A DNA stretch of 64,000 nucleotides from Anthoceros angustus (taxonomy: Eukaryota > Plantae > Anthocerotophyta). Location of the stretch: contig MU008197.1 in the NCBI GenBank assembly GCA_010909165.1, positions 186,001-250,000 of the forward strand, read 5' to 3'. Positions 7,372-44,551 of this stretch are shown here, in pieces. The notes beneath the pieces are model-generated. The model saw only the letters and a list, made by a program, of their open reading frames with translations. It searched no databases and had not been told where the DNA came from. How positions within the stretch are numbered: position 1 is the stretch's first letter; each line of letters opens with the position of its first letter. The translations under genes were made by a program, and so were the position numbers.

Positions 7372-7820
7372 GGCCGCTGGCTGCAGTCCCCGCCACGAAA
7401 TATCCGAAATTTCACATGAACGCCATCAGATCTGGGCGACCACCATGGCACCCGCAGCTGTGCACCTTCCCTGCCAGCCTCTCTTAGATCCCACCGCCAA
7501 GCCACAGCCTGCCTGGCGCCAAGGCCATCATCGCCAACGCCCCCGTCCTTCCAAATTCCTGGACCACTCCAAAGAAAGTCACCAAGAGGCTCGGTACAGC
7601 CCGGTCCGAGCCTGCCTGAGTCGGCGGGAAATCCGTAACCGCCGCGTTTCACTCGAAGGTTAGGTTAGACGAGGAACACCGCCTTCTTCCCGTCTCTACC
7701 GAAACGTGTCCTGAATTCGGGGTAGTGTGGGTTAACTATAGTTTATCAAGTTCCTTGGGCAGGAAGGGAGCCCTATACTATACTGGGCGCAAGGAATCGT
7801 GATCCACAGCGGCATCTATC

Positions 7821-11423: not shown

Positions 11424-12090
11424 AAAACCGCCTAGTCGAACGAAGTTGAAAATATCTTGTGTTTTCCTTCCGATACCATATCGGTTGGTCACACCTAAAA
11501 AGTATATACACATGTACTTAGGTTGTTTGTATGGACAGTATGGACACCATGGTAAGGGCCTTTCACAACGAAGACAAAATTGGAGTATGCAGTCTATCGT
11601 CGGGTGCGAAAAGGTAGAACATGATTATTTTTATCATTCTTTCACTATCATCTATTGATCGGTAAACTAAACTTTCACGCTCCGTTTACAGCGCCGTTTC
11701 GCGTTTGTCAGTGCGGGAATGTAAATGTTTTGGGACGAGTTAGTCCCATCACAACACGCGTGATGGGTTTTCAACACCGTTCGATATCGAGATGCGGGCG
11801 ATTCGTCGCAAACTTATCGGTGCACTATGGGTTATTAACTTATCGGTGCCTTATGGTCGCGACACCGAAATCTGGGCGACTCGTCGCAAACTTATCGCGG
11901 CCATCCTAATTGACGAACAGCGCCTTTCGCCTTCCGTGATCCTTATTGTCGTTCCTTGTTGAGGTTAGTGTATAAATATTTATCAAAATTATTATATACT
12001 ACTTATTAAAATTAAAATAAAATAAAATGTATTTTATATATATTATTTAAAATAAAATTATTGCAGAAACATTTCCTCCACGACGGTGAA

Positions 12091-12135
12091 GGCGCCTATG
12101 GCATACCAAAGGGACAGAGGGATGGGACATTTTTT
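12091..12135 (+). repeat. Left TSD (GGCGCC, 12091-12096) and left TIR (from 12097)
   Basis: First 15 nt (TATGGCATACCAAAG) are identical to the reverse complement of 33446-33460; the match continues imperfectly to about 35 nt. Confidence 0.9.
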
Positions 12136-12349
12136 TTTTGAAAACCCATGCAAGGCGTGGGGATCTTGAGAATATACCCTACATTCCAGTACGGTTTCTT
12201 TTTCACAGCACATGCACATGGCGCTTTGGCGCCCTAACCAAGAGCGGCCAAGCACCAAAGGGACACACACAATGTCCTCCAAGCGGAAAATTTTGGTGCT
12301 TTCACCTTTGAAAACAAAGACGGGACACTATGTTTTCAAATGTTTCCAC

Positions 12350-14380
12350 TACCTTGTGCCATTAAGTTTTCTTGAGGGCATCCAATGGCCACCAAACCCT
12401 AACGTGGCCTTCGCTCCATTGATTGACAACCCTACCGGCATGGGTATCGCCAATAATGACGCTGGGCAGCCATGGTTTGCGAACCATGCCGACAGCCGTT
12501 CCTCGTCTTGACTATGGACTTTGGGAACCGTGTATTCCTTAAGGAACCCGCGATCTGGAAACAATGAGAGCCACGATCCTCTTTCAAACAAGAAGAAGCA
12601 CGATGCGGCTCGAAGCGGGAAGAGGGATGGCGACCCACCACCTCCTGCCCAACAACCTCGCCAAGAATGTTTATCTTTGCGTGCAAGAGCCAAATTCACG
12701 CAAGAGTGCCATTCCATTGATCAAAAGGATGTCCCGCACACATCGCAAAATTGCGGCTAGCATCAAACCCTATCTCCCTACTGCGGCCTTCCTGCATGCT
12801 TGACCCCTATGCAAAACCAAAAACCCGATGCACTCTCGGCTGAGGATGACGGCCGCCTACTTCCCTCGTCCTCCATGCGCTTGATCATCTGTAGGAGAAC
12901 CTTAATTGTGCCCTCCATGGCCTCGGCGGCGTCAGCATTCATGACTCATCGCTCTCTGTCGGTTGGCGCGTCCCGCCTCCGGCGCGTCCGGGCATTGGGC
13001 GTCGGAGGCACCCGCCTTGCGCCGCGCTTCCCGCCGGACCGTGTCCGACCTCGTAGTCGCCTCCCCTTGTGCTCGCCCTCCGGAGTTGGGGTTGGGCGCA
13101 CTCCGCTCTCCATCTTCTTGAGCATGGCCTCCGCTCCGCCACCGTCGGTGACTTGCTCCCACCCCTCCTCCTCCTCCTCCTCCTCCCTCAGTGTGCCGCG
13201 GATCTGGCCTCCATGGCCGTGAGCTCGCCGGCCGCCTCCGCTCCTCCCTCGCCACCTCCGAGCCTCGCCTAATCTGCTGCTTCCGCTCCACGTCGAGATC
13301 GCCACCGATGGGCGGTTATTCCTCCCATACGCCTTCCTCAGCGGATGGCGCGCTCGACTCCCTGAGATCGCCGCCCGGCCGCTGGCGCGTGGCTCGCCGT
13401 CCGCTCCGGCCGCGCGCCCTCCACGCCTTCCGCATCCCGCCCTCCATCCGCCATCGCCGAGCCCTCGTCGGCCTCGGTCGGGCGGCGATCATCGCCCTCC
13501 CGCCACCGCCCAGGACCTCGGGGAGTCCGGCATGGCGGGCCAGTGTACGCTGCCGCCGCCATGCGGGCTCGGCCTCCGGCTCGGCGGCATCGAGCCCATC
13601 CCCATCCTCTCCACCCCTCGACCTCGGCCCGGCCCCGCGCCGCCCTGCGTCGGCGTCCTCACCCGCGGGTTGGCTTCCCTCTCGAAGGAGGCCATCTCCA
13701 TCGGCTCGATGTCCATCGGCGCTCGATGTCTACTCCCGCACCGCCCGGCCTCGCCCCGCTTGTGGGGGAGGCAACCTCACCTCCCAGGTCGGCTGGGCCT
13801 CGTGGCGTCGCCGTGGGGGAAGGTGCCCTCCCCACTCCCGTGATGCGCCGCCCCCACGGCGTTGGGAGATCACCGTCCTTCTCCCTTCCGCCTCCGCCTC
13901 CGCTCCTGCGCCGCCCGCTGCTGGCGCGCCCGTGGTATGGGGATAATGGTGCCATCGGACCCTCCTCCTCCTCCTTGTCGCCGCCCCCACGCATCTGCCG
14001 TGCATGCACAGGGGAGGGCTGCTGATCTCCCTCCCCTCTGATGCCCCGAGGTGGCGATGGCGTGCGGTGGGGATGGCAGATGCCTCCCCACCGCTGCTGC
14101 AGTGCAGCCCGCCCCTTGCCGAGTGGCGTCTGCGCCACGGAGGTAAGATGCCTCCCCGCTGATCACTGCTGCGGTGTGCCGGGATCTGCGTCGGTATGGG
14201 GTGCACTGCCCCTCCTCCTCCTGTTCGCCGCCCCACGGCGTCTTTGTCGGGATGGGGAGGAAGATCTTATCCCCGCCTCCGCCGGCTGAGCCGACCCGGA
14301 GGCCCATGGCAGCGGCCTTCCACTCCCGGCTCGTGCAGCTGCTGCGCCGCCCCCCTTCCCGCCCGGCAAGCGCGTGGGCA
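12350..14380 (-). pseudogene. GC-rich frameshifted orphan ORF(s) inside the transposon
   Basis: Protein-like fragments in shifting frames: LREEEEEEEGWEQVTDGGGAEAMLKKME, AEAMEGTIKVLLQMIKRME and EERLSAWFANHGCP. No family recognised. Confidence 0.35.
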
Positions 14381-14509
14381 CGGGGGCTTGGTGCCTCCAC
14401 CCCTTTGTGGACTCGGACTTCCCTTGAGGTTAGAAATAAGTAGGGTTTTGTTTTTGTAGGCGAAGGATAAAATAAGGCGGAAAAGGAATAAGCACGGATA
14501 GCACTCGGC

Positions 14510-17500
14510 CTCGGAGTATACTCGGACTCGGAGTGAGAGCATACCCGGACCTACTATGGTAGGGGAGTAGCAGGATAAGTCCGGACCCACTCCAGTCAAG
14601 CGGGATAAATGCATGATAACTTAGAAGTTGAGCCGTGAGGGCGGACTAGGCGGCGCCACGTGGCGGCCACAGTGGAGGGCGGGCATCGGTGGCAGGCCGT
14701 AACCTTGCGAGGCCGTTATAGCGGTATTCACGCCCGGGCGGCCAGTCTGGCGGCGTAAGGCGAGTAAGCGGGCGTAAGGTCGAGAATAAGCCATGCGAGA
14801 CCTCTCAGCGATTCTGAGACGAGGGCGCCTTCCAGCCCGATTACTCCGGCGTGGCGAAGGAAGTCATTCATTGCTGCGACCTCGAGACAATTCGCGATCT
14901 CTTGCGCTCCATGATCCGGCTCTCTGGCGCTATCTCGTTGGGCCTCGGATCTTGGTCACGTTGAGGTTGGGCGTGACCGGCGGCGCAGCGTGCCGTGTCT
15001 CGGCCAGCGGCTACGGCAAAAGGAGGCGATGGCACCCAAAAACTGCGGAAGTTTGGGAGCCATGGAACCTCGTGGGCGCAACATTGTGACTCGGCGCTAT
15101 CGGACTTTGGGCCACAGGCTGGAGGCGGAGGGTGGCGGGGTGGCACTTGGATGCGTTCGGATAGTGCGGGCGTTGACAGTGTCACTCTGGTCAGGGTTCG
15201 CCGGAAAATCTTGGCGGTCAATAAGGAGGTGCGGTCAAGAACCTCGGGAGGACCAGGCGATGGACCTTGGAGGTCTGAGGCGGCCTACAACCGCCCAAAG
15301 GAGGAAGAAGGGGTGGTGCGGGCCCCTCAAGGCGAAGGGAAGATAGGGCAGCAATGGCGATCTTTGAGGCACAGGACGCGGAGGACCCTGTGGATGGGCG
15401 ATATCCGACTGTTGGACGGTCGAGTAAGGCGGTAGCCGGATCATTATCCATTGGAACCTCACCAAGGTGGATCACCTTGGTGATAACTGTTAGTATTCAC
15501 GCATGCGCTGCGGTGGAAGAAGGCGGGGAGGAAGGATTATCTTCGCCGGTTTAGTCGAGGCCAGCTCGGGCGAAGCCCTCGCCATCAGGCATCCCCATGC
15601 AGATCCATGTATGGGGGCATTTGACTCCTCAAGGAGGAGGCTTGGCGCTCGGAAAGAGGCGAGGAGGAGGAGGCGAAGGCGCTGAGGAGGAGGCCGTCGA
15701 AGCCAAGCGGACCGGGAGGAGGCGGTGGAGGATTCCGGACTCCATCGTGCAGAGCGGACCCCTCACCACCCAGTATGGGAAGAAATTCGCTTCCCTCCTC
15801 ACAGTGCCCAGCCGGGCGGCCGATCGGCGAGCGGCCCCGACCCCAGCCCGCCACGGCCACAACCCGGCGCGGGCCCCGGACCGAGGAGGCGGAGGCGAAG
15901 GCGCCCCGGCTACCAGCGCGGCACCTCAGGCGGTGCAGTACCCTTACCCTTGCAGGGTAACAAGCGGAGGCGGTAAGGAGGCGGAAGGGCAAAAGGGCCA
16001 AGGAGGCGAGAGGACAGCGGCGGCCCGCACAGCAGTCTGTCGCCCGGCGGAAGGGCAAAAGGGCTCCGGACTCCCTCACCTCCTCAAGGCCCAGGAGAAA
16101 AAGGCGGAGAAGGAGCTCGCGGCCAAAAGGGCCAAGGAGGGTGAAGCTCGGCTCGGCCTCGGGACCTAAGGGTCTGATTAGGTCAGAACCAGTCCGGACT
16201 TACTCCGGGCAGTATGGAGGTCCTTGGCGGACCGTGAAATCGGCTCCCGCTCACGGACTTTGTGGGAGCCTCACGGTGGCCGTGGAAGAAACACGGTCTG
16301 GCTACCGTCATGGACGGTATGCTTTGGGGTCTCGGGATGGCCGAGACCCGGAGGTAGAAGCCACCGGGCGCATGGTACTCCTCCGGGAGGCGGTTGGAGG
16401 GGGGAGGCGAAGGAAGGCGAAGCTCTCGGCGGATTGAGAAGGAAGGCCAAGCTCGGCCGATTGAGGAAGGGAAACGGAGGCCGAGAGGGAGGTCCGTCCA
16501 TCCGCAAGGACCGGACTAAATTCCTTCAGTGGAGGAGGCGGTGAGCGAGGCTAAGGAGGCCCAAGCGGCCGAGGACCTCTGCTGCGGAGGGAGGCGGAGG
16601 CGGAAGCGGAGGCGCAGGACTGGCGGAGGCGGCGACTAGACGAGCCAAGGCTGGAGGCTCGGTGAAGGTGGCCAGGAGGCGGAAGCCACAGGCCGTCGCG
16701 ATCACTATCGGCGTGATCGGGCCGGTGGAGGAGGCGGTGGTAGCAGCCAATCGAAGGCGGCGGGGAGGCGGTGGCGTGAGCAGGCGGAGGCGGCGGAGGC
16801 TGGAGGCCGGCACGAAATCGGGGACCTCGGTAGCAGTGCGGGGAGAGTAGAAGGAGGCGGCGGGGAGGCGGAGGCAGCAAGGACACCTTGGAGTTACAAC
16901 TCAAGGCAGCGTCGGAGCGGGGGGTTCTCAACGAGAATCCAAGACTTGGAGATAGGCGCCTCGGCTCTGCACGAAGATGGGCGGGAGGTGGCGGAGCAGC
17001 GGACCAGGGCCCAAGTTCGCGACAAGGAGATGGAGGATCTCGGACTCGGCTCCGGGAGGTGGAGCAGCGGCGGAGAGATGGAAGACCGCAAGGAGACTTT
17101 GGGCTGGACTTCAAACTACCATTGAGAGGAATGGTAGTGCGGGACATGGTCGCGGCAGCCGAAATCGGCTCGGCTCGGTTGGCGGGCCAGTCGATGCAGC
17201 GATGGAGCAGGCGGGGCGTCGCCGAGATGGAGAAGGGCTGGCGAAGCCCGCGATGCAGCAGTTGCCCGGCCGTCGGAGAGGAGATGGCGGAGTTGCGAGA
17301 ATGGACAAAGAGGCGGGGCGGACAAGAAGGCTGGTCCGGTGAGGAAGGCGGAAGGAGCAGCTATGGTGCAGGTGGCGTGAGCAGGCGGAGGAGTTGGGCG
17401 GGTGGAGCAACGGCGGCTGCGGGAGGTAGAAGGGAGGCGGCCCTGCGACCTCGCGCGACGGCTCCGGCTATCAAACTGGCGGGAGGTGGACCAACAAGCG

Positions 17501-18755
17501 GGCGCAGCTCGGCTCCGGAGCACCTATGGCGAAGGAGTATCGGGTGCTCGGGCACACGTGGAAGAGCAATCCAACAAGTGGATTCGGACTTTGCCTATTA
17601 CCACCGAGCCCAACCCGGCTCGGCTCCGGGAGGCGGAGGCGGAGAAGGAGGAGGCGGAGGCGGAGAAGGAGGAGCCAACCCAAGACAAGGGCCTGGGTAG
17701 GAGGAGGACCTAGCGATCTGAGGTCCCAGTGAGGGGTCGAGCTTGGGGACGGACCCGGTAATAAGTTCGGACCACGAGGTCGAACCCGGAAAACGGACCA
17801 GCGGCCGGACTCGGCTCCGGACCCACAGGTTGAGACTCGGGTCGAGACGGACCTCGGTCGGGACTTGGCGATGAGGCCCCGACTTCGCTGGGGAGCGATG
17901 GCGGTGGCCCCAGGAGAGGACCCAGGGGAGGCGAGGATGACGCGTAACGGCGGCCGCCGACCACGAGCCCAACCCGGCTGTGATTCCGGGAGAGGAGGGT
18001 CCGCCTCGCGGATCATCCGATTAGTGCGCCCATAGCTGTCGGGACGGAGATTGGACCACCAATCCCAAGGCGGAACTCGGACCTTCCCACCCCACCGGCA
18101 AGGAGATAGGGGAGGAATAGGATGGTAGGCGGCCGATTAGGGCATCTTGGTGACCATCGGCTCGGAATAGGTGTAATAAAGGCGCCCGACTTGGGCGTAG
18201 TATAAGAAGAGGCTGCCTGAATAAATCATCTTTCTCTTGGTGTTGATGCGTTCTTGCAGACCTTTGTGTCTTCTTGCTAACGTGAGTCTGAGTCATGGCG
18301 AGCCGGCTCGGAGGATTGATCGGTCTGGTAGCGGACCTAACGTGTTGTGGTGTGTGCGGGGAAGGGTGACTGGGGACCCGTGCTCGTCGAGCGACCCGGC
18401 CGAACGGACCGGAGCGTGTGGCCGGAGGGACTCGGGAGGCGTCTGAGCCGGACGGAGGCCGGTGAGCAGCGGAGGAGGTCGGGGTAACCAGCGTCTTTCC
18501 TTAAGGCGATAAGTGTAGTGTGAGTGGAGAGGAGCGGATGAGGTGTGAGTGTGAGCGTGAGCGAAGCAGGGTGACAGGTCCTTAAGCGTTTGGCCATAAG
18601 ACTGTGCGGTGTTTGTCGCGAGTAGTTAGACGTGAACTAAGGGTGTGTGCGTTGGGTGACAGACGCCAAGTAAGGCGAGAATCGCTGAAGCAGCGCAAGC
18701 AGCTTGTCATTCCCTTGAGAACGAACTCCTTCCTACAACGACACGGATTGTGCGC
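14510..18755 (+). mobile_element. Unclassified ~4.2-kb interspersed repeat (copy A) with a frameshifted ~2.9-kb orphan ORF (ATG 14793), nested in the transposon
   Basis: Collinear similarity to 51908-59815 on the minus strand. Shared segments include gagaataagccATGCGA, AEVWEPW.LV.RNIVT.RY.DFGP, AIQQVDSDFAYYH and the terminus acaacgacacggattgtgcg. Confidence 0.75.
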
Positions 18756-18782
18756 CCGGGGCCGTCCGGCCAAAGTCGCGCC

Positions 18783-19130
18783 ACCGCCTCCTCCTCTGCT
18801 GCAGCGCCTCCCCGCCCGCTGCCGTCTGATGGGGGGATGGCAGTGCCCTCCACCCGCCTCCCCGCCTCCTCTGCTGCAGCGCCTCCCCGCCCGCCATCCA
18901 TGGCACACCCCGCCTCCTCTGCTGCAGCGCCTCCCCGCCTCCTCTGCTGCGCCTCCCCGCCCGCCATCCATGGCACACCCGCCTCCCTCGGCGGTGCGCC
19001 GCGCTTTCCTTCGCATCCTCCATCTAAGCGGGCGGCACTCCCTCCACCGTTCTGCAGCCGCCACCGCCCGCCAAAGGGAGGTGGCGCTGTATCCTATGCC
19101 TCCTCCTCTGCTGCAGCGCCTCCCCGCCAC
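18783..19130 (+). repeat. GC-rich minisatellite (core ccgcctcctctgctgcagcgcctccccgcc)
   Basis: Core repeated about 5 times; translates as recurring PPPLLQRLPA. Confidence 0.8.
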
Positions 19131-20799
19131 CCCGCCTCCCCGCCGCCCGCCGCCGCAGCGCCGATGCCCTCGCCGCCATGGCGCTCCTCCTCTCCGCGCG
19201 CCGCCGCCATGGCGCTCCTCCTCTCCGCCATGGCGCTCCTCCGCCGCTGCCGCCATCGCTGGGCCACTGCACGGGAGAGTGTCCTCCACCTTCCTCCGGC
19301 CGCGTCGCCTCGCCTCGCCTCCCCGCCACCCCGCCATGCTCTTCTCCTCAGCGGTCTCCTTCGATGAGCCTGACCTTACTCCCTCCACCCCGCCTTCCCC
19401 GCCTTTGTACGCCCCAAATTTCCAATTGCCCTGCACTTGTGGTTGGCGGGAGGTGTCTACGGTGGCCGCACGCTTCGACTCCGCATGTCCTCCTGTGTTG
19501 GGATTCATATCGCTGAATCCGCTCGCCATACTGCCTGGCCCCAGCTGGCCGCCCAATTTACGCCCCCGCAAAAGTTATCTGCATGCATTGGCTGGAATGG
19601 GCAGTTGCAGTTCTCGTGCGCATGCCTGCCACACTGATTGTCATGGACACCAATTGTCCAGCACCCCAGTTCGACCGCAGAACCACTTTGGCAACCATGA
19701 CACGGGCGTCCCGGCCCCTTTGTCAACCGTTTTCGCCTACCTTTTGTTTGTAGACGTAACCGCCAACTCCTTTCCTCTTCCCACGACATTTGCAGATGAC
19801 CGTGAACTGGACCGCCATGACTCTGCACTCTTAGAAATCACTATTCGGTTTCTCACACCAATTATAGCTATAAACTTTGTCCGGGTCACCCGTCTCGGTC
19901 CACGCAAACACAGGCGCAGGCTGCCACCGCCACTACTACTACCAATGCCACAATTGTGATGGCACCGCTATAATCAGGATCATAGTGTAAAAAGCGACAG
20001 AAAACGTAGCTCAGAGACCCCATCCTCATCCGTCGCACCTCTCATACCGAGTGCCAACGATCGCCCGCCATCCATGGCACACCCGCCTCCACGACCGCCT
20101 TCCCCGCCTCCGACGGCCATCCCGCTGGGCCACCACCCCGCCCCTCTCCCGATTGCTTCCTTTGTCCCACGGAGCTTCACCTCCTTCGATCACCAAGACT
20201 GGACGACAACCGCCCCTCGCCATTCTTCGCTCGCTGTGTGTTGTGATCGCAGCCGCACTGTATGTTTTACCCTCGATTCCGCACCACCTCTTCCGCGTTT
20301 CCACTAGCCACTCGCGATGCAAACTCCTCCGCTTCCATTCCAAGGAGGTGCGCACGGAAAAGGCGCTGCCCACCGCCGCCCATCGCCATCGCCGAGGAGC
20401 ACGCGCACTGCACTCCTTCCTCTCCATCCATCACACTTCTAAGTTGTTCATCGCGTTCGCACCCTACACCCCGGTACAAGAAATCGGAGGTGTCCATCGC
20501 ACGCAATATCACCTCCACCAATCGCCTTACAACACCGGGTTGGCGGCTGCCACAACCGTTCTATGCGATCGTCCGCCGCTTCCAGCTCGCCCGCCATTCT
20601 TCGGCCGCCTCGCCGCTTCTGGCCTCAGTGCTCCAGCCGCAAGTTCGGATCGGCTTCCCAACGCTTCACCGCCGTTGTGGATCGCCGACGGGACAGTTTG
20701 CCGCGTTCGCCCTTGGACTCCACAACCTTGAGAACAAGTGCGTCATGCAGGACAACGACAGCATGCATCATGCAAAACGTCATCCGCCATGTGGCCAAG

Positions 20800-22120
20800 C
20801 CGCCACGATGCGGAGGGAAAAATCATACCAACTTCGCAAGCACCATGTTTGTTTTCCACGTTATTCCTACATATATAGCCATGTATGATATAACTAGTTT
20901 CAAAGACCAGGTCATGAACAATGACTTGTACCATAGGCCAAGGACCCTTTTCAATGATGCATGTAGAGACAATTCCATTGGCCAAGCATACACATAGGCC
21001 AAGCATACAGACCGGGAAAAAACATAAGGCAAATTTCCGACGCATCCTGGGAAAAAATCATTCCCCATGGGCCAAAGAACTTTTTGGAGGATGCATTGAA
21101 AAAATTGCCACAGGCGAAGATTACAAGGGGACAAAACCAAAACAAAACTTCGCCCATGTCATGCAGGTTTACGTTGTTATTCCCAATATATAGACATACA
21201 TGATATACCTCGCTCAACGACGAATACATTCATAGTCACATGTGCCAAAGGCCAAGGAGCCTTTTCCCACATGTCGGGAAAGATGCACGAAGCATACAAA
21301 AGGTAACATATGGAAAGGAACTTTCAATGCACTGAAAGCCTTCGCCATAGGCCAAGGAACTCATCTGTGATGCATGGAAAAAGCGATGCGCAAGCACAAA
21401 AGGCAAAACCCACAACACAACTTCTATCCTATCATGCACGTTAACGGTGTTATTCTTGCATATATAGACATACATAATATACCTTAGTTCTAAGATGAAG
21501 ACATTACCATTCACTTCTACCAAAGGCCAAGGACCATTTTCTTCAGAAAAAACCCAGAAAATCAAGGGCAAAAACAATATGCGCTGTGCATGCATCATGG
21601 ACAAAGTTCATTCCCCATGCCCCAAGGAACTTTGTTCATGATGCATGGAAACTTGCCATCGACGAAGGATAGAAGAAGGCAAAACTAGAGCACAACTTCT
21701 CACATATCATGCGGTATACGGTGTTTTCCATATATAGAAAACATAATATACCTCTTTTCCAAGACGAAGACATTATCATCACTTGTACCAAAGTGCAAGG
21801 ACCCTTTTCATTGATGCATATAAAGGAAAACCCTTTCGCGATACATAGAAAAGGGAAACAAAAATAAGAAGCTTTTCCATTGCTACGCACAAAGATCCTT
21901 AGGCATATGCCAAGGAACTTTATCGACGATGCATGGAAAATTTGCTTTCGCAAGGGATAGAGGAAGAAAAACGAGCACATCTTGCAAGAAAGATGCTTAG
22001 TTTTCAACTTTCTCCTACATATATATCCATATATTATATACCAACCTTTCAAGGATGCTAGCATGTCCTCAATCCTACTATAGGCCAAAGTCCAAGGAAC
22101 AAGACATATGTAATATTTAT
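20800..22120 (+). repeat. Degenerate AT-rich tandem array, unit ~270-310 bp, ~4.5 copies
   Basis: Recurring ..ggccaaggaccctttt.. at about 20935, 21250, 21525, 21795 and 22090, with recurring catatatag and gatgcatggaaa segments. Confidence 0.75.
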
Positions 22121-22699
22121 GTCTATATATGCGGATTACATGCATATGTGCACATGCTCTAACACGCCAACGCCCCTTCGCTAAACCCTAAAGATGTTTT
22201 ACCTTTACATCTACATGCCATCCAACTATTGACACACACACATATGGGAAGAGCAAGCCTACACTGTATATGTAGCACTAACTTCCTTGGCCTTTGGTGG
22301 TTGAAACAACATGCATGATGTTTCGTTTGTGACAAATCCCAAATGCCAAGGATGACATGTCTTTTGTAGTATATGCCTCACTACCTTTTCTTGGCCTTTG
22401 CCATGGAAACACCATGCATGATGTTTCCTCCTTTCAAATATCCCAAAGGCCAAGGTTGTCATGTCTTCTGTAGTATATGTACCACTACCTTCCTTGGCCT
22501 TTGAAAATTGGAACATTATGCATTATGTTCCAACCTTTTTTGGGCCTTATAGTTTGGCCCAAAAACTGTCCATACTAGACATGTGTGAACAAAAAAACAT
22601 CATACTCAAAATCCATCTGTTATTCCGCCATCCATTCAAGTTCTCAAATGCCAGGGACAAATTCACTATATATGCTTGGGTTCGGGGCTGTAAACTGTA

Positions 22700-25600
22700 T
22701 GGAGGAAGTGATTTGACATAAACCGCAAATTGCTACGACGAGAACACGGCCGTCCTTGGTCATGTCGGAATCCCCCCTTCCTGTGAGCAGACCGATGTTT
22801 TGTAGACGAGGCTGCGCGAACCGCCTGTTCACGACCGCCACCGGTGCACGGAGCATGGCCCCTGTTTGCTGAAGATGCGACCCGCGTCTTCCCCAAGCGT
22901 CGCGCGGGCCGCATTCTTGTCCACGGCCTCCTGTCCCGGTCCCTCTGCACCAGAATACTTCAAACATAAACAACGCGTCTTCTAGAAGGGCGCGTTTAAA
23001 GCAACATGTCCTCATCTCCACCATCCGCCTTAAACAATGCGGCCATCCGACGAGGTGCATGCCGGAGACGGCGGACGACGCGCCATCTCCGCTCTTCCGA
23101 TGTAATGAATGTCGTGTTTCCGTCTGAAAGGCGGGCATTTGTTAATCCTAAGCGGGGTTTGAGGCGTTTGGGGCACGACTCCACGAAATAATGAACCTCC
23201 GCTCTTGTCATGCGAAAGATCGTGAAGACGGGAGAGCGGCGTGATCTTCAGATCGCCGGGCGGCTGGTTCGCCATCGCGAACTTCGCCCGCCATCTCCCA
23301 CCCTTGACCGGAAATCGGAGCCGGAGGCCGTGACCAAGGCACACCATCTTTTTGGTGGACTCGCACCAATCCAAGTGAAAACATGGCGAGCGAGGAGAGG
23401 CCGAGCGCCGCCGCCGGCCGAATGTCCGGCACGATGGCGGTGGCGACATTCTCGGAGATTGGGTGAACTCCGACGAGGATGCAAATGTCTTCCACCAAAT
23501 CCCCACGCCAAGGTCGGCCTCATCGCGTTTCCAAGCCTCCCGCACGCTAGAATTCACGGCGCGAGGCAATCCGCAAGGCCCCTCCGGTGTGTGACACCGC
23601 CGCCATCGCGGCGGACCCTTGGCCGGCGTGCATTGCGATCGGCGCGCGATGCAGGCGCGGCGGCCGGGCGGTACCTTCCGGACAAGGAGGTGGGGTGCAC
23701 GTTCCCTCCACGGCGGAACCGCAACGCGCGGGTAATGGGAAACATCCCCTCACACAACGCCGCAATCACCCGATTATGGTTCCCGGGAGACGGCAGAGAG
23801 GCGGGCGCCGGCGCGCAGGGGCCGGTGCACATGAAGAAGCTCTCTATTACGGTTCCGAATCGCATTACGAGGCCATCCACTTAGGACCGAGGCGATGGGG
23901 GAGGCGGTTTGTCGAGGATTGCTGCAGCCTGATGGTGGAGTTGCACGCACGGCCGCCATGCCCGTGGGAGGCGAGGACGTTCTCGAGTTTGAACCGGGAC
24001 TGGCGCTGCACTGTGGACCGGTGGCGCCTCTTCCGCCTTCCCGCAGCAATTTGGGCCTGGTTGCTTCATCGAGCAACCGGAAAGTGCAGCCGCCGATCGC
24101 AGCCTCACAGATGACCCGCTCCCCGTTTCGCCGAGCACCGCATCACGAGCGCTAACGTTTTGCAAGGTGCGCTTTTGTATGTCCGGGATCCCGATCCCGA
24201 TGACGCCTGCTCATGGTCCGCAACTACCGAGAAAAGGGGTCTTGGAAGAGGAGGAAGGAGCGCGGGCGGAAGCGGATTTCGACGGAGATGACGCGGCACA
24301 CCGGTGGTGGACGGACAGACTCGATCTCGGTCGGACGAGATCCGACTTGACCAAGTGGTTTGTGGCGCATCGACCGCACACAGCAATCGCAGTGGGGCCT
24401 TCGTAGTCATTGACGATTCGCGAGATGAAAGGACAGCGGCGCCCTCCGGCCGCTGCTGCGGGACGATCGTCATGGAGCATCCAAAGGCGGTGAACGCATC
24501 GCAGCCATCCGCCATCGGCGTCGATTCTTGAAACATACGGGCGTTGCGGCATGGCGCCTGCTTCCGCCCCGAGGCTGCGAAGAAAGCTGCCAGCCATCTC
24601 CCGTGCGCGAAACGGAATGCGCGAGCGCGTGAGGCCAAAATGTTTTTCGACATCCTGCGCGAGGCGCGCGAGAGGGAGTGCAGGATGGGGGGAATCCGGA
24701 CCACGCTGCGGTGTTGACCGAAGTGCACTCGATTATGGAGAAGGCGACAGGGACATCGGATAGACACGGAGGGTTGCCGCGCACCGGTCGGCGTCCCCGG
24801 GTTGGAGCTTTACGATGGGGATGAGAAGGCTTCATCGACGTGACCCGCGCAGGCTCGCTGGAAGACGAGACCCGGCCCTCGATCTCGGGGCCATAGAGCC
24901 CGAGGACTTGCGGAGACATGGGCCACAACCAACCTCCGCCACTGCTGATGAGGAGGAGTTGCCGCGCTGCACGGCTCACCGAGAATGGAAGAGAGCGCCC
25001 GCCCGGGCGGCGGAGCGTACAGCCAGTGAGGGAGACGCCGGGCGCTTTACCGGAAGTGGCGCAAGAGGCCCACGATGCCGCCAACTCCGCTATGCGCGTT
25101 CGCCTCACAAATACCACTGGAGCCCATCCACGAGCAGACGCATCGCTGTAAGAGGCGGATTGTCTTGAAGGTAGGACCTCCTGCGCCTCTTGCCATTCAA
25201 GAATTGAAGTGCCCAAGATACGCCGCCATGGCCACTTTCCGATGCTTATGCGGGTGGCGTAGAGGTCAGCGAATGCGGGCCTGTCGACCTCTTCAAGCAA
25301 CATTGTGATGGGAAGTCTGTTCTACGGTTCCATGTCCAAGACGCAACCCGGCATGGGGGTAGTTGCAGGCGGAGACGGTTGATTTAGGGACTCGCCACGA
25401 CGGCGAGGCATGGCGGCACTCGCGTAATCCCATGTTCATGAACTGCGTGTTTGAGGCGAGGACAACCCGGGGCTCGGGACACCGCACCACATCAAAGGGA
25501 AGTCCATCTCGGATGAGCGATTGTGTGGTGAGTCGCGTGTGTGTGGAGTGTTCATCATAGCCGCAGCCTTTCATTCTAACACGCAGCCTCGACTCACGGC

Positions 25601-26399
25601 TCGGTTCTTTGGCTACCTCGTGTACATGGTGCGGACCGCGTGCAAGTGTCATGCCCCATGGCCGTGGCCACAATTGCACACGCCCTTGGCGGCCGGATGG
25701 ACGGGCGGCGTGTGGCAAGATGCGCCGGCTCATCGTTCTTGAGGAAGGCCTTCAAGGCGGACATGAAAGCGTGCTACCGGAGGTGATGGGTGTGTTGTCT
25801 ATCTTTGAAGAAGGCCTCATGGGCAAGTGCGGACCGGCGATGCGGCCATCAAGGAGGCCGTTGCCCTCATCACGGCCGGGATCCGGAGTTTTTCGACATT
25901 TTGCACGCCGCCCGGGACCGCAGCTTGGCATGGAGGTGAGCATGGTCCGTGAGAGGCTAACCGAGGAGGTCTTGTTTAAAAGTGCTTGCATGTTGGGGGC
26001 TTGTGGACGGGTTCGGACTTGTGGTGCAGCTTGGGCCTTTCGGGCGGTGATGCCCATTGTGAACACGTTATCTTTGAGGTGGTCGCTTTTTCTCCGGTGC
26101 TCAAGGATGTACAGATAACTTCCGAACGGACGACCTTTGAGGCATGCACCCACAGTGAAGACCATGTTCGCCGCGACGCGTGAGGTTGTCTTTGCGACGA
26201 GGCGGTACACCTTCATTACGGACCGCGTGTTCTTTGGTGAGGGGCGCCAATTGTGGTGTTTGAAGTACCATTGATGACGGAGGACAGCCTCCCCAGCCAT
26301 GACGCAGCCGGGACATTGCTCCTTCCATTGTATGACTCGAGGACACTATGTGCGCGGTCTTGTGCCATTTCTCACAACACGGTTTATGGCATGGCCTAG
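22700..26399 (+). pseudogene. HECT-type E3 ubiquitin ligase-like gene, frameshifted (HECT ~25350-26399; 5' limit uncertain)
   Basis: C-terminus FITD..EDSLPSHDAAGTLLLPLYDSRTLCARSCAISHNTVYGMA* matches the HECT C-lobe pattern. N-lobe-like ETVDLG..NPMF..VFE and ARFFGYLVY lie about 300-350 codons upstream. Confidence 0.65.
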
Positions 26400-27112
26400 C
26401 GAGATTGCCGAGCCATTGTAGAGGTGGCCAAGTCGTTGTGTGATGTGTGATGTTCGATTGGGATTGTGGACTACATGTTTCAAATGCCATCCCATTGGTA
26501 ATTATTGATGAGTTGCAAGTTGCGTGTTCATTGGTCATTGTTTGTGAGTATGTGGGGCGAAGGAGGTAGCTTGTGCACACAAAAGGAGGCGAATTAATGC
26601 ACCCGCGTCGAGAAGGACAACGTGGCGGCGCGTGCGAATCTTAAAGTGTGGCGGAGGAGCAATGACATCGCGCCTCTGCGGGTGCCTCCGAAAAATCGCG
26701 ATGCCCGCCCTATTCAATTTCAAGCGGAAGGGGAAGAGTCCATGCGCGCCGCCGTTGTAGGGAGACTCCATTCTCCTGCGACCGAGTTGTGGAAATCGTG
26801 GAGCCATGGCCGGGTCATCGGGCAGAGCAGGACCACCGTTTCCGACGACGCCGGAGGGCGCGACAACGGAAGTCGACGAAAACTTGTGGGTGAAGGGACA
26901 TCGTGAACTTGAATCGCGGTCCGGGGGGCAAGACCCGTGAGAGCGGGCGTGAATAGTTGGGGTTGGGCGGAGGGGGCGGCTAAGGAAAGGAGGGGGGGAA
27001 ATCATTGAGCATGGAACGAAGAAGGCGGCGGTGGCTCGATGCGCGGTTGTTTTGCGGATGGGGCCACAGCAAAGCGCGGATCCGTTGGGCGGAGCGAGCG
27101 AGGACACGGGCG

Positions 27113-27885
27113 TGGGCGGCGATGGCGGCGAGCGCGTTCCAGGTGATGACGAGCGTCGACATCATCGCCGTCCATGCCGGTGTTCGCGCTTGCCGGACGA
27201 CATTCGCACGTCTGCATAGCGGATGGGGGGACATGGTGGCGCATGTCTTGAGGTGGAGGAGACAAGGGCTGCGGGCTTGGACTCGTGGGTGGTTTTGGTG
27301 CACGGATGGAACCATGCCGGTGGAGGATGCTCCGATGAGAGGTGGGCAATGCAGTTGTGGACGGGGGTTGCGGCACATGCACCGAGGGTATCTATTTCAG
27401 CACATGGACACATTTGAAGTGCGGAGGCTGCGAAGAACAAGGAGCCTCGCCACGCGGATTGGTGGGTTGGGGCGGGTCCAACACGGAAGGAGAAGGGATG
27501 CGGCGATGGCGGCGAGCGCGTTCCAGGTGATGACGAGCGTCGACATCATCGCCGTCCATGCCGGTGTTCGCGCTTGCCGGACGACATTCGCACGCGTCTG
27601 CGGATGGGGGGACATGGTGGCGCATGTCTTGAGGGAGGAGACAAGGGCTGCGGGCTTGGACTCGTGGGTGGTTTTGGTGCGTGCAGGATGGAACCATGCA
27701 GTGGAGGATGCTCCGGATGAGAGGTGGGCAATGCAGTTGTGGACGGCGGGGTTGCGGCACATGCAGGGTATCTATTTCAGCACATGGACACATTTGAATT
27801 GCGGAGGCTGCGAAGAACAAGGAGCCTCGGCACGGATTGGTGGGTTGGGGCGGGTCCACGGAAGGAGAAGGGATGCGAAGGCGAT
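27113..27885 (+). repeat. Imperfect tandem duplication, ~385 bp x2
   Basis: ASAFQVMTSVDIIAVHAGVRACRTTFAR occurs twice in ORF 27005-28297. Confidence 0.9.
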
Positions 27886-28889
27886 GGAGTTGGCCGCCGC
27901 TCAAGAGTGCAATGGTGGTGTGGTGAGGCGGATGCAATGTGGTCGCCGCTTTGGTGACGATGGTCGACCGGTGTACGTGGGTGGGTTCGATCGCGGACCC
28001 ACGTGTACCATGCGACGGTGGTGGACACGATTCACCGAATCTGGATCGCCATGCACGAAAAGGAGCATGCGCGCACCGCAAAGGGCGCGGGTGCCGGTGG
28101 AGTGGGGATGTGACACTGGTGCATCGTGTATGGACCGCCAGCAGTTCCCGCTTAGATGTGTGGACCGGGCAGCGGGACTACATGGGCATGTTGGCGATGG
28201 CCTGCAGCGATCGGCAGGGCCGAATGACAATTGCCCGCGCGGAGTCGACGACGGGGGTGCCGCCGGTCTGGCAATGTCGGTTGCCGTTTCTCCTTGACAA
28301 CCAGGATGCGTATGTGTTGTACGTGGACAAGGCTGTGAGCTTCTTTGCCGAAGAGGAGGCATTGCAGGCTGCTCACGTCATCCTCGAGCACTGCGCAGTA
28401 TATGGGAGCCCGAAATTCCCGAGTGTTGGGGGGCTGCTACAAAGAGTCTCGTGTTTCTCTTCAACGTGCACACACCGCGTCCTATCACCGAGAGTTGTGG
28501 GGTGGAAAGGCGAGGAATAATGGTGGGCCGAGGTAAAACATTGTATCGTGGATTTGTGGAAAGAAGCAAGGTACGCATCAATGTCCTAAGGCATGGGGGG
28601 GCAACCCAAAGCGTTCAAGTGAATAAGGCACATGACGCTCATTTCATGAAACAGGCCGGTGGCGTGAAAGCGGAATTATTCGACATGGGGCCGAGATGAG
28701 GAAACCACGCATTGTCGATGGAACAAGTGGCGTGCTCGGTCAACCCGACCGCTCCAGTGAATCCCCGGAGACCGCGCAACGGCGAGGACAGGCTGTGGGG
28801 AGGATAGGCCTGAGTACGCCAAACACCCGCATGATCATGGGGACGCCGAGAACGGCGGGGTTGGGTTCGCCTGCATGGCGGATCTGATT

Positions 28890-29420
28890 GATGGCGCGGA
28901 GGAGGGGCGGGCGGGCGGAGGAGGGCGGAGGCGGAGGCGGTGTGGGGAAGGAGGGAGATGAGGGTGATGACGAGGGCGGGTGGATGGCGGGCGTGAACGG
29001 GGCCTGGACGATGGGGTTGGATGGAGGGGCGGAGGGGCGGGGCGAGCGGAGGCGGGAGGAGGAGAGGCGGAGGCGGGGCGGAGGGAGGGGCGGTGGGCGG
29101 GGCCGGGCGCGGGTGGGAGGAAGGAGGAGGGGGCGAGGCGGTGTCTGGGAGGCGGGCGGGGCGGGGCGGGCGGGGCCGGAGGGGAGGCGGAGGCGGGCGG
29201 GAGGAGGCGGAGGGGCGGAGGCGGAGGCGGGGCAGGAGGCGGGCGGGGCAGGGGGCCTGAGGCAATGAGAGGATGGCGAGGCGGAGGGGCGGGCCGAGGC
29301 GCGGGTGGAGTGGGTGGCGGAGGGAGATGGGCGTCTGCAAGGGGAGGGGGGGAGATGGAGGGGCCGAGGCGCGAGAGGACGGAGGGGGATCCGATGGAGG
29401 AAGGGAGGAAAGCGAAGTGT
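28890..29420. repeat. G-rich low-complexity tract
   Basis: Runs of ggcg/ggag/gggg with almost no T. Confidence 0.8.
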
Positions 29421-29599
29421 CGGAGGTGGAGGCGATCACGAGCCCTCCGACATCAAAACAGAGGGCGGGAGAGGGAAGGGAACGTCGGCAGCCGCCTTCA
29501 AGTGGAGACTTTGAGGAACATCGCAGAGGGGCGGAGGAGGGCGGACATTGAAAGGGCTCGCAGCGAGCCGGGATGTGCACCGCGGACGCTGAGGAGGTG

Positions 29600-31036
29600 G
29601 CCGCACGGTGCCCGGGATGGAGAGGTCGCCACGCCGGGTCCGAGAACAATAGAAGACGTCTGCAACCTCATCCTACAAAATGTCTCCATCACGCGGCAGG
29701 GTGTGAACTGGGGAGTGAGGATTGTGCAAAGATCGGGCCACGGCCGTGCCTGTGAGGTGTGACGGCAAAGATTGCGAGCCATGCAGCCGGAGGCCATGGA
29801 AATGAGGTCGCAGCTGCGCATTCGGCGGGGTGCAATACGTAATAACCGATGTACATGTGGCACATGGATCGTGGAGTGTGCGGAACTTGGAGCACATGGT
29901 GGTCGCTGAGTAGATAGCCGCAGCAGACAACGCATGCAAGCTAACGGTGCGAGAGCCGCAGCACACACAAGATGTACATGTTCCACTTCAGGGTGCACGC
30001 GGCCATAGATGGGGCCACGCACTACATAACGTGGGCGGTGCTGGAGGACAACAAGCGGGCAGGAACAATCTACAAGGCGTACGCGGAGGCGGTGCGGAGG
30101 TTTGGGCACCCGCAGCGGATTCGGTCCGATTTCGCTGCGGAGCACAACCTAGTTGAGGAGGACCTGAACCAGGCGAGGCCGCGAGAGAACGGTAGGAACT
30201 TCATTCGGGGGCCATCGGTGCACAATCAGGTAAGGTGGATACTGGATGTCATGTGAAGGGGATTTGCCGCAATGTGCTTCACGAATGCGGCTGCGGAACT
30301 TCCGGAGGCGGAGGGAGATGGGGCAACGCACTACATAACGCGTGGTTGGTGGGTGGAGTGCGTGGGTGTGAGGCGCGATCGAGCACTTCCGGAGGAGGCG
30401 GAGGGAGATGGAGGGGCGGTGGGGCTGCATAAGAGGTACATGTTGGAGCCGCAGGATGCCGTGAGTTGGATACCACGAACCCTTGGCACATACATTCCTT
30501 GCACGCAGATTCATGCCCACCATGAGGATGACAGAGCCACTGCTCGGGTGTGGAACTTGCATGTGGTGAGGAAAATGAGGTCGGAGGCGATGACATAGCT
30601 GGCCACGTCCCGCGGAGGCCTTCCAGAGGAGGAGGGGCGGGCCGGCCGGTAGGGCCGCCCGCATATGGGGTAGACGAGGAGGGCGACAACGACTACTATG
30701 TCCCGGACCACAAGACGCTCAATGTTGCACCGGAGGTGCCACCGCCTCCGATAGCATTGCCGACAGGGTAAGTGAACGCCACCAAGACCGTCTGAATGTG
30801 AACACCAGCACGATGACGACAAATGTTTTGTGTAGGACATGCAAGTGGCGAGGACATGGCGACGAGGTGCTTGAAGTGTACAAATTACCTCCGGACATGT
30901 ATCGCTCGTGACAGAGCGTGATGTACAAGTTGTATTGCGCGACGGGGATCCCTCCGCAGGAGATGGTGTGGGAGTGGAATGCGACTGGCACATGTGGACA
31001 TGGAGAGCCCTTAACCTCTTGACGCTTTTCATATGA
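29600..31036 (+). CDS. DDE transposase, IS3/IS481-like integrase core; intron-containing, with apparent frameshifts
   Basis: Reads RLRAMQPEAMEMRSQLRIRR..MYMWHMD, then THKMYMFHFRVHAAIDGATHYITW..DNKRAGTIYKAYAEAVRRFGHPQRIRSDFAAEH..FIRGPSVHNQ, then IEHF..WNLHVVR. Splice donor GT at 30230 and an intron at 30768-30835. Confidence 0.85.
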
Positions 31037-31736
31037 GGTGCGTCGCGGGTGGCACGGGGCGGACTAGGGGCGGGCCGTAGTGCAAGCGGGGAGACAATGA
31101 CATGGATAGGGAAGGCGACGGGACAGGGCATCACCGATAGGATAGAAACGTGAGGGCCGAGGGGCCACCGCGTGGACACATGACACAGGGCTCATGGAAT
31201 AGCCTCCGGCCCAAAGAACCGCTGGGTCCACCGCAAGGCATGGGCGAGACATTCCACAAGTTACATCACGACCTTCCGAGAATGGTGGAGGAAAATTGTG
31301 GAGACGCGTGTCGGAATCACCTTTGTGTGTAACCGCATTCCCCTTTAAGTGGAGGCAGCAGCTATCAAATCGACGAACCTCTGTGAAGAGCGAGTTCCGC
31401 GGACCCAAATCACACTGAAAGAAGGCAGCCTGTATGGGTTGTCAATGACGCACATGGAAAGCTGGGGCAAAAGCCGGGGGCAGGGGTTGACAAGGCGAAG
31501 GGAGAATGGAAAAGCGGGCCAAAATATAGGCACGAGGGAACACGATGCGCGGCGGCAAGCATGAACCGAGGGCCAAGTTGAAAACGTGGGCATGATATCC
31601 GCCGAGTGGTGAGAATAAACCAAGAGGGAAGCGTCAAAATTTGGTCAAGTCAAACTGTGGGAAGCGGTCAAGACACCTACAAATCTAAACCGTAAAGGCC
31701 TCAGACATCAAGTCCTATCAAAACCCTCGCCCATGC

Positions 31737-32480
31737 CTAAAGCACATGACCACGCCCAACCCCATGATCACCGCCCTCGATGATGTAGAGGTCGCTCATC
31801 TCCTCCCACAAGACATGGTTGGCGTCGTCCAATTCGTAGAAGGCGTTGAGATGAAATCCGGGAGGGGCGATAGGCCGAGGCCGCCTGCAGCTGTGAGTCA
31901 AGCCGTCGGAGTGAAACTTGGCCATCCACGGCTTGAAGTCCTCCGGTGACTCGGTGCTTGGACCGCGAGGCCTCGCAGGATCGTTAGGACCCAATGGCCA
32001 CCCATCAAAATGGGTATGCATGAAATAGTGCGCTCACTGGAAGGCACTCAGAGGGAAGTCCGTGTCCAAATACACTGCGACCACGCCCTCACCAAAAGAA
32101 CTTCAAGTCCAAGGGTAGTTCTCTATGTGGCGATGAGGTCGCTAGGTCCTCCGCAGTCGCAAAAGCGCATCAAGCTCCTCGAGGACAAAGGATGCATTGG
32201 CTTCTTGGGGTCATAAGACCAGAAACAACTCACTCCACATATTAGGATCGGGTGAGCTCGGAGGAGATCGTGGAACCCTCCTCCTCCACACATGCGCCGC
32301 AGGGCCGCGCTGCCCCGGCATGTGAGGAGGAGAGGGTGGGCGGTGCACGCCATCCCGCCCACAACCGCAGAAGCCTACAATACTCGCAGGGCACGTACCA
32401 TCTCGCGGTCACCGCTTGCAAAGAAATGAGCATCAAACAATTCGGCATCACCATGGGCGGAAGGAATGGGGCGAGGTTAG
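31737..32480 (-). pseudogene. Orphan frameshifted ORF inside the transposon
   Basis: Fragments ARWYVPCEYCRLLRLW, LMRFCDCGG and FKPWMAKFHSDGL..FHLNAFYELDDANHVLWEEMSDLYIIEG. No family recognised. Confidence 0.4.
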
Positions 32481-32509
32481 TTGCGGCTTGGTGCAAGGAT
32501 GGGGAGGGC

Positions 32510-33155
32510 ATCACCGCCTCGCCCGCCTCGCCCGCCGCCTGCCGCCCGCCCGCCCGCCTCCGTCCCTCGCCGCCCGCCGCCCCGCTGGCCCCTCGCCGCC
32601 CGCACCGCCTTCCTCCGCCTCCCGGCCTTCCCGCCTTGCCCGCCTTGCCTCGCCCGCCTCGCCCGCCTCTCGCCCGCCTCTCCTTGCTGCGGTGGCCGCC
32701 TCCGTCCGTCACCCAGTGAAGGCCCGCCGCCTCGCCCGCCTCGCCCGCCTGCCGCCCGCCCGCCCGCCTGAGTCCTCGCCCGCCCGCCCGCCCGCCCGCC
32801 TCGCCGCCACCGCAGCCCTCCTCCGCCTCCCGGCCTTCCCGCCTTGCCCGCCGCCCGCACCGCCTTCCTCCGCCCGCCCGCCGCCGCCCGCCGCCCGCCG
32901 CCGCCGCTCGCCGCCGCCCGCCGCCTCGCCCGCCTGCGGTGGCCGGGCTCGCCCGCCGCCCGCCCGCCCGCCCGACCACAATGAGGGCGCCTGCCGCCCG
33001 CCTGCCGCCCGCCGCCTCGAGGCGCCGCGGCTCGCCGCCGCTCGACACGCCCGCCGCCGCCTGCCCCGCCCGCCCGCCGCCTCCGCCTCCGCCTTGCCCG
33101 CCTCGCCGCCCGCCGCCGCCCGCCGCCGCCTCGCCCGCCGCCGCCGCCCCGCCAA
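32510..33155. repeat. C-rich (CCG/CCCG)n low-complexity repeat
   Basis: Reiterated cgcccgccgcctcgcc units. Confidence 0.85.
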
Positions 33156-33424
33156 ATCGCTTGCCCTAAACCCCTGCCCTAAACCATGCCGCTCCACCCT
33201 CTTAGCACATGAACCCTAAAACGGCATGTGGCTTGCCTATGAGGCCCACCGGACCCTAAACAGAACGCGCATGAACAATAATTTTTGTTCGCGTGGGAGA
33301 AAACACATAGAGTGCGCGAAAAACCCTAAAGTTCCCTTTATGAAATGTGACCGCATGCTTTGGTGCGTCCCTTTGGGCTACCCCATTTCGGGTTACCAAA
33401 CCGACACCAAAAGTTTTATGGAAG

Positions 33425-33466
33425 AAAAAATGTCCGTCTCCGTCTCTTTGGTATGCCATAGGCGCC
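33425..33466 (-). repeat. Right TIR (to 33460) and right TSD (GGCGCC, 33461-33466)
   Basis: Reverse complement reads TATGGCATACCAAAGAGACGGAGACGGACATTTTTT; flanked by GGCGCC. Confidence 0.9.
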
Positions 33467-33858
33467 TACCCTTTTGTCGTGCTGGTTGTGAAAGGCAGGG
33501 CCAGGACTCTACGACATAGCTATGTATGTTTACACATAATTTTTGATTGCTTAAGCAAAAATCATAAACTGATAAAAAAAAATTCTAGAAAACAATCCAG
33601 TTCTGGTTTCGAAGAAGAAGAAGAAGAATTTTATTTAAGTCCACTAAGGACGGATTTTCGTCATGGGACTTGTACTTGGGCCAAGGGCATCCACTCCCTT
33701 TAGGCACCCCATCTAAGTACCGATGAAAGCTCAGGATGCTCAATCACGACGTTCTTATAAATGTGTGTCCATTTGGCCTAAGCCATTTGGACACACATAG
33801 TCTATACGCGCTCCCTTGGGTGCGAGCCCATGGCAATTTTGACGAAAGCAACCTGACA

Positions 33859-37820: not shown

Positions 37821-38357
37821 TCACACGCCTACTTCACTCCAAACGGATGAAGAAGCCAGAAGTGGGTCTTGCTCGGTGGAAGCAAGGGGAACAGCAGCAA
37901 CTGGGTCTACCACAGCTGCGGAGGCATGTACAACAGCGTCAACTGGATGTAACTCAGTGGATGCAAGTGGAGCAGTGGAGTCGAACAGAAGGTTGTCTGA
38001 AGAAGCAAGTGGAGCACTAGCATCTGATGAACTTGTAGAATCCAAGCCAAGTTGGTCCGTAGAAGTTAGACCCGCCATTGGAAGACAGAGTTCCCCAAGG
38101 AAAAGGAGTCTTTGGCAGCTTGTCAAAGCACAACAAGTTCCTCCGCGGCATCCTTGGAATGAACAAGTCAAGGGAATAGAGAAGTCTGAAAAATCAAGCA
38201 GCCCTCGCCTGCTCGAGCTCACATCTCGTGAGAGAGAAACTGCTCCTTTTAGCATACGTCCGCCAAGTTTGCTTTGCTCGTGCGCGTTACAGGAAATGAC
38301 GGTGAAGCATACACAAGCGATTAGCAAAACGGCAATGCTATTTGTGTTGTTAGCCAT
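37821..38357 (-). CDS. Secreted cysteine-rich precursor with knottin-like C-C-CC-C-C core and acidic tail (paralog 1)
   Basis: Signal peptide, pro-region ending RR, then CSFQGCRGGTCCALTSCQRLLFLGELC and a Ser/Asp/Ala-rich tail. Confidence 0.8.
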   Translation of the reverse strand: MANNTNSIAVLLIACVCFTVISCNAHEQSKLGGRMLKGAVSLSRDVSSSRRGLLDFSDFSIPLTCSFQGCRGGTCCALTSCQRLLFLGELCLPMAGLTSTDQLGLDSTSSSDASAPLASSDNLLFDSTAPLASTELHPVDAVVHASAAVVDPVAAVPLASTEQDPLLASSSVWSEVGV

Positions 38358-39456: not shown

Positions 39457-39885
39457 TTATAACCCCCTTGAGAACCAATCATCTTGTGAACCATCACTTC
39501 CCGGTCCCCCTAGTGAACCATCACTAGGAGGACCTAGTGAACCATCACTAGGTCCCCCTAATGAACCATCGTCTCCACCACCACGTCTTGGTGAACCGCC
39601 AGCCACTAAAGGGATGCAAACTTTTGGTCCAAAAAGAAAGAGTTGAGTACAAGTGGACAAGCCATTGCAACAAGTATCACCTTCTAGACATTTTAAATAT
39701 AAAACACACTCAAGTGGATTTGTAATTTCAACTGCACTACGTTTGGTTATTTTATTAGAAATAGAAAGAGCTCCTTTCATTAGTCGTCCATCACTTTTAC
39801 CTTTTTTCTCAGCTTTACAAGAGGATATAACACACAAAACTATAAGGAACAAAGAAAGTAAACCAATTCGAGATTTTTTTTCCAT
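39457..39885 (-). CDS. Secreted cysteine-rich precursor with knottin-like core and Gly/Pro/Asp repeat tail (paralog 2)
   Basis: MEKKSRIGLLSLFLIVLCVISSCKA; GRLMKGALSIS matches paralog 1 GRMLKGAVSLS. KR is followed by CVLYLKCLEGDTCCNGLSTCTQLFLFGPKVC and DGSLG[GP]P repeats. Confidence 0.8.
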   Translation of the reverse strand: MEKKSRIGLLSLFLIVLCVISSCKAEKKGKSDGRLMKGALSISNKITKRSAVEITNPLECVLYLKCLEGDTCCNGLSTCTQLFLFGPKVCIPLVAGGSPRRGGGDDGSLGGPSDGSLGPPSDGSLGGPGSDGSQDDWFSRGL

Positions 39886-43358: not shown

Positions 43359-43359
43359 G

Positions 43360-44525: not shown

Positions 44526-44551
44526 ACCTTACCTAGTCCAGGCACCGACTA

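Follow-up and report, generated by a model that had tools for sequence, protein, structure and literature searches.

A 21.4-kb stretch of the Anthoceros angustus genome is very probably a genuine insertion of a cut-and-paste DNA transposon of the IS3EU/GingerRoot type in a non-seed land plant. The element carries a transposase and a probable HECT accessory gene. Its size appears to have been increased by a 4.3-kb repeat, by expansions of low-complexity DNA and, in part, by duplication in the assembly. The analysis covered a window of 64 kb, by which we mean the whole stretch of DNA, and related loci elsewhere, which are numbered with an L.

Ends, target-site duplication and genomic setting

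The element occupies positions 12097-33460 (21,364 bp) and is flanked by GGCGCC at 12091-12096 and 33461-33466. Both ends start with TATGGCATACCAAAG, which is perfect over 15 bp, and imperfect inverted similarity continues to about 40 bp. The terminal features are as follows:

12091..12096, no strand: left target-site duplication (TSD) GGCGCC, palindromic and all G/C
12097..12136, plus strand: left TIR with a TATGG start, 15 bp perfect and ~40 bp imperfect
12255: second subterminal CCAAAGGGAC copy, left side
33376, minus strand: second subterminal CCAAAGGGAC copy, right side
33421..33460, minus strand: right TIR with a CCATA end
33461..33466, no strand: right target-site duplication GGCGCC

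The 64-kb window contains 140 perfect 15-mer inverted pairs, just one of which has a 6-bp direct repeat at its flanks, and this pair is made up of the element's own ends. Roughly 0.03-0.07 pairs combining a 15-bp TIR with a 6-bp TSD would be expected by chance, and no further TIR-like ends with the family terminus were seen in the window. In addition, the motif CCAAAG[GA]GAC is present exactly twice at each end of the element, in inverted orientation, and is absent from the rest of the window, a pattern as expected if these subterminal repeats are bound by the transposase. The ends and the TSD are real, and a chance origin is unlikely. The initial annotation had described a complete 21.4-kb element with TIRs and a perfect GGCGCC duplication, and the uniqueness of the terminal pair in the window supports that description. 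It had also read the insertion as recent; here the perfect duplication stands but the age does not follow from it, since a 6-bp TSD alone is weak evidence and holds little information on insertion age. When the empty site was rebuilt by joining 12079-12096 to 33467-33481, it gave an imperfect palindrome with a short hairpin fold, for which z was about -2.3 with 20-base flanks and not significant with longer flanks.

The placement of the insertion between HISN4 and a lectin gene was likewise borne out. On one flank, motifs recognised by eye mark exons that we take to be those of HISN4 (DYGAGN at 8120, QFHPEKSG at 9125 and IFHRKE at 11264). The lectin-like ORF on the other flank matched Pfam B_lectin with an E-value of 0.012 only, and a search for homologues of this ORF found none.

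Several other features of the window were noted. Genes are compact, with a GC content of about 50%, which is in keeping with a hornwort. Ordinary host genes recognised by eye at 606-2100 and 2800-4560 (-) and at 5500-7400 (-) are an SBDS/Sdo1-like gene, a gene for a transporter of the WAT1/EamA type and, upstream of HISN4, another gene with multiple exons. Two related ORFs at 37821-38357 and 39457-39936 (-) encode small, secreted proteins rich in Cys, whose starts resemble signal peptides. A tandem array with a unit of 45-48 bp lies at 42899-43411, and broken pieces of a copia-type retrotransposon with RT/RNase H motifs lie at 43167-47966 (-).

The transposase and its relatives

The element contains a single gene of this type, identified by its Pfam rva_4 match, its motifs and a frameshift-aware scan:

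29650..30630, plus strand: IS3EU/GingerRoot DDE transposase, spliced and frameshifted

The core exon, a stop-free piece at 29960-30229, matched Pfam rva_4 with 56.6 bits (E 3.6e-15; cut-off 26), and a match of the transposase to Pfam rve was weak (E 9e-4). The first catalytic residue, D1, lies in WHMD at 29858, D2 in IRSD at 30119 and a candidate E in AIEHF at 30375; further motifs are HK at 29966, VHAAIDG at 29993, GPSVHNQ at 30209 and WNLH at 30551. The N-terminal region contains GVNWG, and NPWH accompanies WNLH among the C-terminal motifs. All motifs quoted earlier for an integrase-type transposase inside the element were found, though split over frames, with those downstream of GPSVHNQ spread over three frames and no single clean frame. 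A GT donor at 30230 directly follows GPSVHNQ, and the ORFs of several relatives also lose similarity at this point. The frameshift-aware scan extended the gene to ~29650 upstream and ~30630 downstream, and its N- and C-terminal parts scored 80 and 69, respectively, versus shuffle maxima of 58 and 53. HHCC, YPYY and GPY integrase motifs were not seen in three-frame translations of the frameshifted region. Because the assembly is noisy in indels, the frameshifts do not separate a dead copy from a mis-sequenced one.

We found 592 relatives of the transposase, the closest with a species name being EFJ27351 and EFJ24363 from Selaginella moellendorffii (52-53% identity); more distant species-named relatives came from animals and fungi. 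A tree of the core, built from rva_4 matches only, over 89 columns and without IS481EU, Ginger or LTR-integrase outgroups, grouped the query and the Selaginella proteins at 95/70, and the named animal and fungal matches split off at 100/99. This grouping with a known plant family is an outcome that the initial annotation had set against its own proposal. The Selaginella relatives themselves sit in TATGG...CCATA elements. Taken together, the TATGG...CCATA ends, the 6-bp TSD, the rva_4 match and the best named matches in Selaginella confirm the assignment to the IS3EU superfamily. When metagenomes were scanned for the core of the transposase, no locus was confirmed. In a close plant-type IS3EU transposase at L002:7396-10480 (also L003 and L004), a ceramidase-like fragment (Pfam PF05875) lies between the N-terminal and core exons, and is possibly a piece of a host gene caught in an intron.

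As is generally known of DDE transposons, and in line with the published traits of this family, transposition involves end pairing, excision and staggered insertion. By analogy with the family, the integrase-like DDE transposase would bind the TIRs and the subterminal CCAAAGGGAC repeats, pair the TIRs and cut the element out. The element ends would then be joined, at a stagger of 6 bp, to target DNA rich in GC; repair after insertion would give rise to the GGCGCC duplication. It is on this basis that we infer cut-and-paste chemistry, and any present activity, for the element described here.

Internal sequence and the HECT-like candidate

The interior of the element contains the following features in addition to the transposase:

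13000..14420, no strand: C-rich low-complexity DNA with 72% GC, from a degenerate repeat family that is found again at 18760-19400
14503..18754, plus strand: 4.3-kb segment, colinear with a repeat copy that lies in inverted orientation at 59790-51907 (62-64% gapped identity)
20830..22530, no strand: AT-richer diverged internal arrays, with ~280-290-bp units at 70-78% and a 104-bp unit x2.5
25350..26396, plus strand: frameshifted gene, probably for a HECT-like E3 ligase; order of landmarks as in HECT, weak statistics
27116..27877, no strand: tandem duplicate of ~380 bp, with 3 substitutions and 12 gap events between copies
28880..29400, no strand: low-complexity, G-rich stretch upstream of the transposase
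32510..33160, no strand: C-rich low-complexity (CCG/CCGC) array

The 4.3-kb segment is an embedded repeat, which aligns over its whole length to a repeat copy outside the element and breaks up the C-rich repeat family. Because this family flanks it on both sides, the segment is most simply read as a nested insertion, probably of another element that would have arrived later. The segment itself yielded neither a TSD nor a domain, and inspection by eye for LTR, Helitron, DIRS and TIR boundaries turned up nothing convincing. We considered the direct repeat TTCCCTTGAG (14419 and 18710) as its TSD and rejected it, the second copy lying inside the region that is common to the other repeat copy. That other copy, at 51900-61500 of the window, owes part of its length to three duplications in tandem (1.2-1.8 kb, ~77% identity), in which gaps outnumber substitutions and which are probably assembly artefacts.

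More generally, tandem duplicates in the window differ chiefly by indels, which we read as typical of long reads with poor polishing or of unpolished nanopore sequence, and the duplicate at 27116-27877 is a probable long-read assembly artefact. The A. angustus assembly was built with wtdbg and Pilon (PMC7027989).

About 6 kb of the element is DNA that is low in complexity, arrayed or duplicated (G- or C-rich low-complexity DNA ~4 kb, diverged internal arrays ~1.7 kb, the duplicate ~0.4 kb), and roughly 8 kb has no recognised feature. Without the embedded repeat and the duplicate, the element would measure ~16.7 kb. PDB and Atlas searches of the cargo pieces were blank. The multi-gene cargo proposed in the initial annotation is weakly supported, with one probable HECT-like gene, no other gene that could be recognised, and much of the length being embedded repeat or low-complexity DNA.

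A different account of this length, which we regard as unlikely, is that the element belongs to a multi-gene IS3EU family that is large by nature (17-21 kb) and possibly still active, with sequencing indels concealing its genes in this copy. The indel-rich duplicates of the wtdbg and Pilon assembly would fit such a family, as would an IS3EU element with a HECT gene that reaches at least 14.7 kb in L009 and L013, and a stop-free stretch at 28200-28520 (+) that reads as protein (…LPFLLDNQDAYVLYV…), itself without a Pfam match. However, no Pfam match above threshold was obtained for ~45 stop-free pieces from outside the transposase core, three-base periodicity was near background across most of the element, and the transposase was the sole part common to the element and the related loci compared.

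Within the cargo, the segment at 25350-26396 presents, by eye and from domain knowledge, what we take to be HECT-like landmarks in the right order, with the tail LLLPLYDS...AI...YG. Searches of this segment against Pfam, PDB and Atlas gave no match, and the position expected for the catalytic Cys is garbled as assembled. The best match in the window to a profile of the Selaginella element-borne HECT proteins falls on this segment (E 0.09), and Fisher p-values were 0.03 and 0.13, on windows picked after the motifs had been seen. Our first choice, a HECT gene on the minus strand, was dropped in favour of the better motifs on the plus strand. Direct support for a HECT identity is weak and the context in related elements supports it better; overall, this identity is moderately probable for the segment.

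We found HECT genes in related element families of two other sources, copies of these families being as follows:

L007:8744-13159: S. moellendorffii, complete TATGG-ended copy
L010:9665-18156: S. moellendorffii, complete TATGG-ended copy
L011:6237-14694: S. moellendorffii, complete TATGG-ended copy
L009:5939-20640: copy of the element in ENA ERZ25067590
L013:5938-20642: copy of the element in ENA ERZ25067590
L015 from 6705: copy of the element in ENA ERZ25067590

In the S. moellendorffii family, which has TATGGC ends, the 8.5-kb copies carry a transposase of the same type together with a HECT-like gene. The TSDs are 5 bp long in all three complete copies (GAGAG, GAATG and GCTCA), compared to the canonical 6 bp. 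The second source is a eukaryote (ENA ERZ25067590), in which an IS3EU element of at least 14.7 kb with a TATGG start is present on three contigs with differing flanks. This element contains an rva_4 transposase ORF that looks intact and, in convergent orientation, a HECT gene with multiple exons (Pfam E 2e-9), and is 99% identical between two of the contigs, its right end lying beyond the DNA examined.

Because HECT genes thus lie in TATGG-ended IS3EU elements of Selaginella and another eukaryote, the candidate in A. angustus is likely to be an accessory gene of the lineage more than fresh host cargo. It is doubtful that the segment is instead a fragment of a host UPL gene captured by this one copy (Pack-type cargo), or no gene at all; GingerRoot is known to capture host gene fragments (PMC6839031) and the HECT statistics are weak, yet HECT genes are present in the related elements and the best window match to the Selaginella profile is this very segment. 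The broader proposal that a HECT E3 ligase is an old, element-encoded accessory of IS3EU/GingerRoot in a lycophyte, a hornwort and other eukaryotes, and that the hornwort family is natively large at 16-20 kb, is a tentative one, for which we judge the balance to lean slightly to the negative. A literature search, with Repbase entries outside its scope, found no paper linking IS3EU or GingerRoot to HECT. If a ligase is indeed encoded by the element, it could regulate how the transposase is turned over or break down host proteins that act in silencing. If HECT is a conserved accessory, the use of the ubiquitin system by a DNA transposon could be put to the test here, as a parallel to the TET/JBP genes of fungal IS3EU elements.

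Finally, it is very improbable that the ends derive from different elements or enclose a mis-assembled span with a chance TSD match, a reading to which the noisy assembly and its probably artefactual tandem duplicates lend some weight but which is at odds with the sole TIR and TSD pair in the window, the lack of other family-type ends there, the symmetric subterminal motif and the single transposase of matching family between the ends.

Comparison with known elements

GingerRoot elements were described in 2019 from Selaginella lepidophylla, with TA..TA ends, 6-bp GC-rich TSDs and lengths of 3.9-12.9 kb; gene fragments were found in 29% of copies, and the group was detected in mosses and lycophytes (PMC6839031). 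GingerRoot and IS3EU form one lineage with 99% bootstrap support (PMC10045372). The novelty for plants that had been implied for IS3EU does not survive these reports: non-seed plants had already been shown to contain the superfamily, and its presence in a plant is not new. Our literature search found no paper placing IS3EU or GingerRoot in hornworts, and hornworts are not mentioned in PMC6839031. What remains is modest: the group probably extends to hornworts, the sizes exceed those published, and a HECT ligase recurs inside IS3EU elements. Of these points, only the HECT accessory gene merits further work.

Like S. lepidophylla GingerRoot (PMC6839031), the element described here has TA..TA ends, a 6-bp GC-rich TSD, extra internal sequence and a non-seed host. 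By-eye comparison with the printed sequence also reveals the same series of motifs in the integrase-like DDE core (H.AID, RSD and G.S.HNQ.IE). The two differ in size (3.9-12.9 kb in S. lepidophylla versus 21.4 kb, or ~16.7 kb net, here) and in their TIRs (100-150 bp versus ~40 bp plus subterminal repeats), ranges that describe one species and are not criteria of the superfamily. Moreover, S. lepidophylla GingerRoot lies mostly far from genes, whereas only ~0.7 kb separates the A. angustus element from HISN4, and ~0.4 kb from the lectin ORF.

Fungal IS3EU elements have TAYGG..CCRTA ends, TIRs of just over 30 bp and accessory genes (PMC12730594). The element shares with IS3EU (Repbase; PMC10045372, PMC12730594) its TAYGG..CCRTA ends, a TIR longer than 30 bp, the 6-bp TSD and, probably, the presence of accessory genes. 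No HHCC motif was seen upstream of the core, a region that is frameshifted here. The accessory genes differ, being TET/JBP and alpha-kinase genes in fungal IS3EU and a candidate HECT E3 ligase in A. angustus.

The 8.5-kb S. moellendorffii family (L007, L008, L010 and L011) resembles the element in its TATGGC start, has the closest named transposase (52-53%) and likewise carries a HECT-like gene and a transposase on the same strand. In this family the transposase precedes the HECT gene, the TSDs are 5 bp and the size is under half, whereas the gene order is reversed in the hornwort element. IS481EU, Ginger1/2 and LTR integrases share a related integrase-type DDE fold, as reflected in the weak Pfam rve match. 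Ginger elements have TG..CA ends, and IS481EU has TSDs of 4, 15 or 25 bp (PMC10045372, PMC6839031). In contrast to all of these, the A. angustus element combines TA..TA ends and a 6-bp TSD with a far better rva_4 score and best matches of the IS3EU type.
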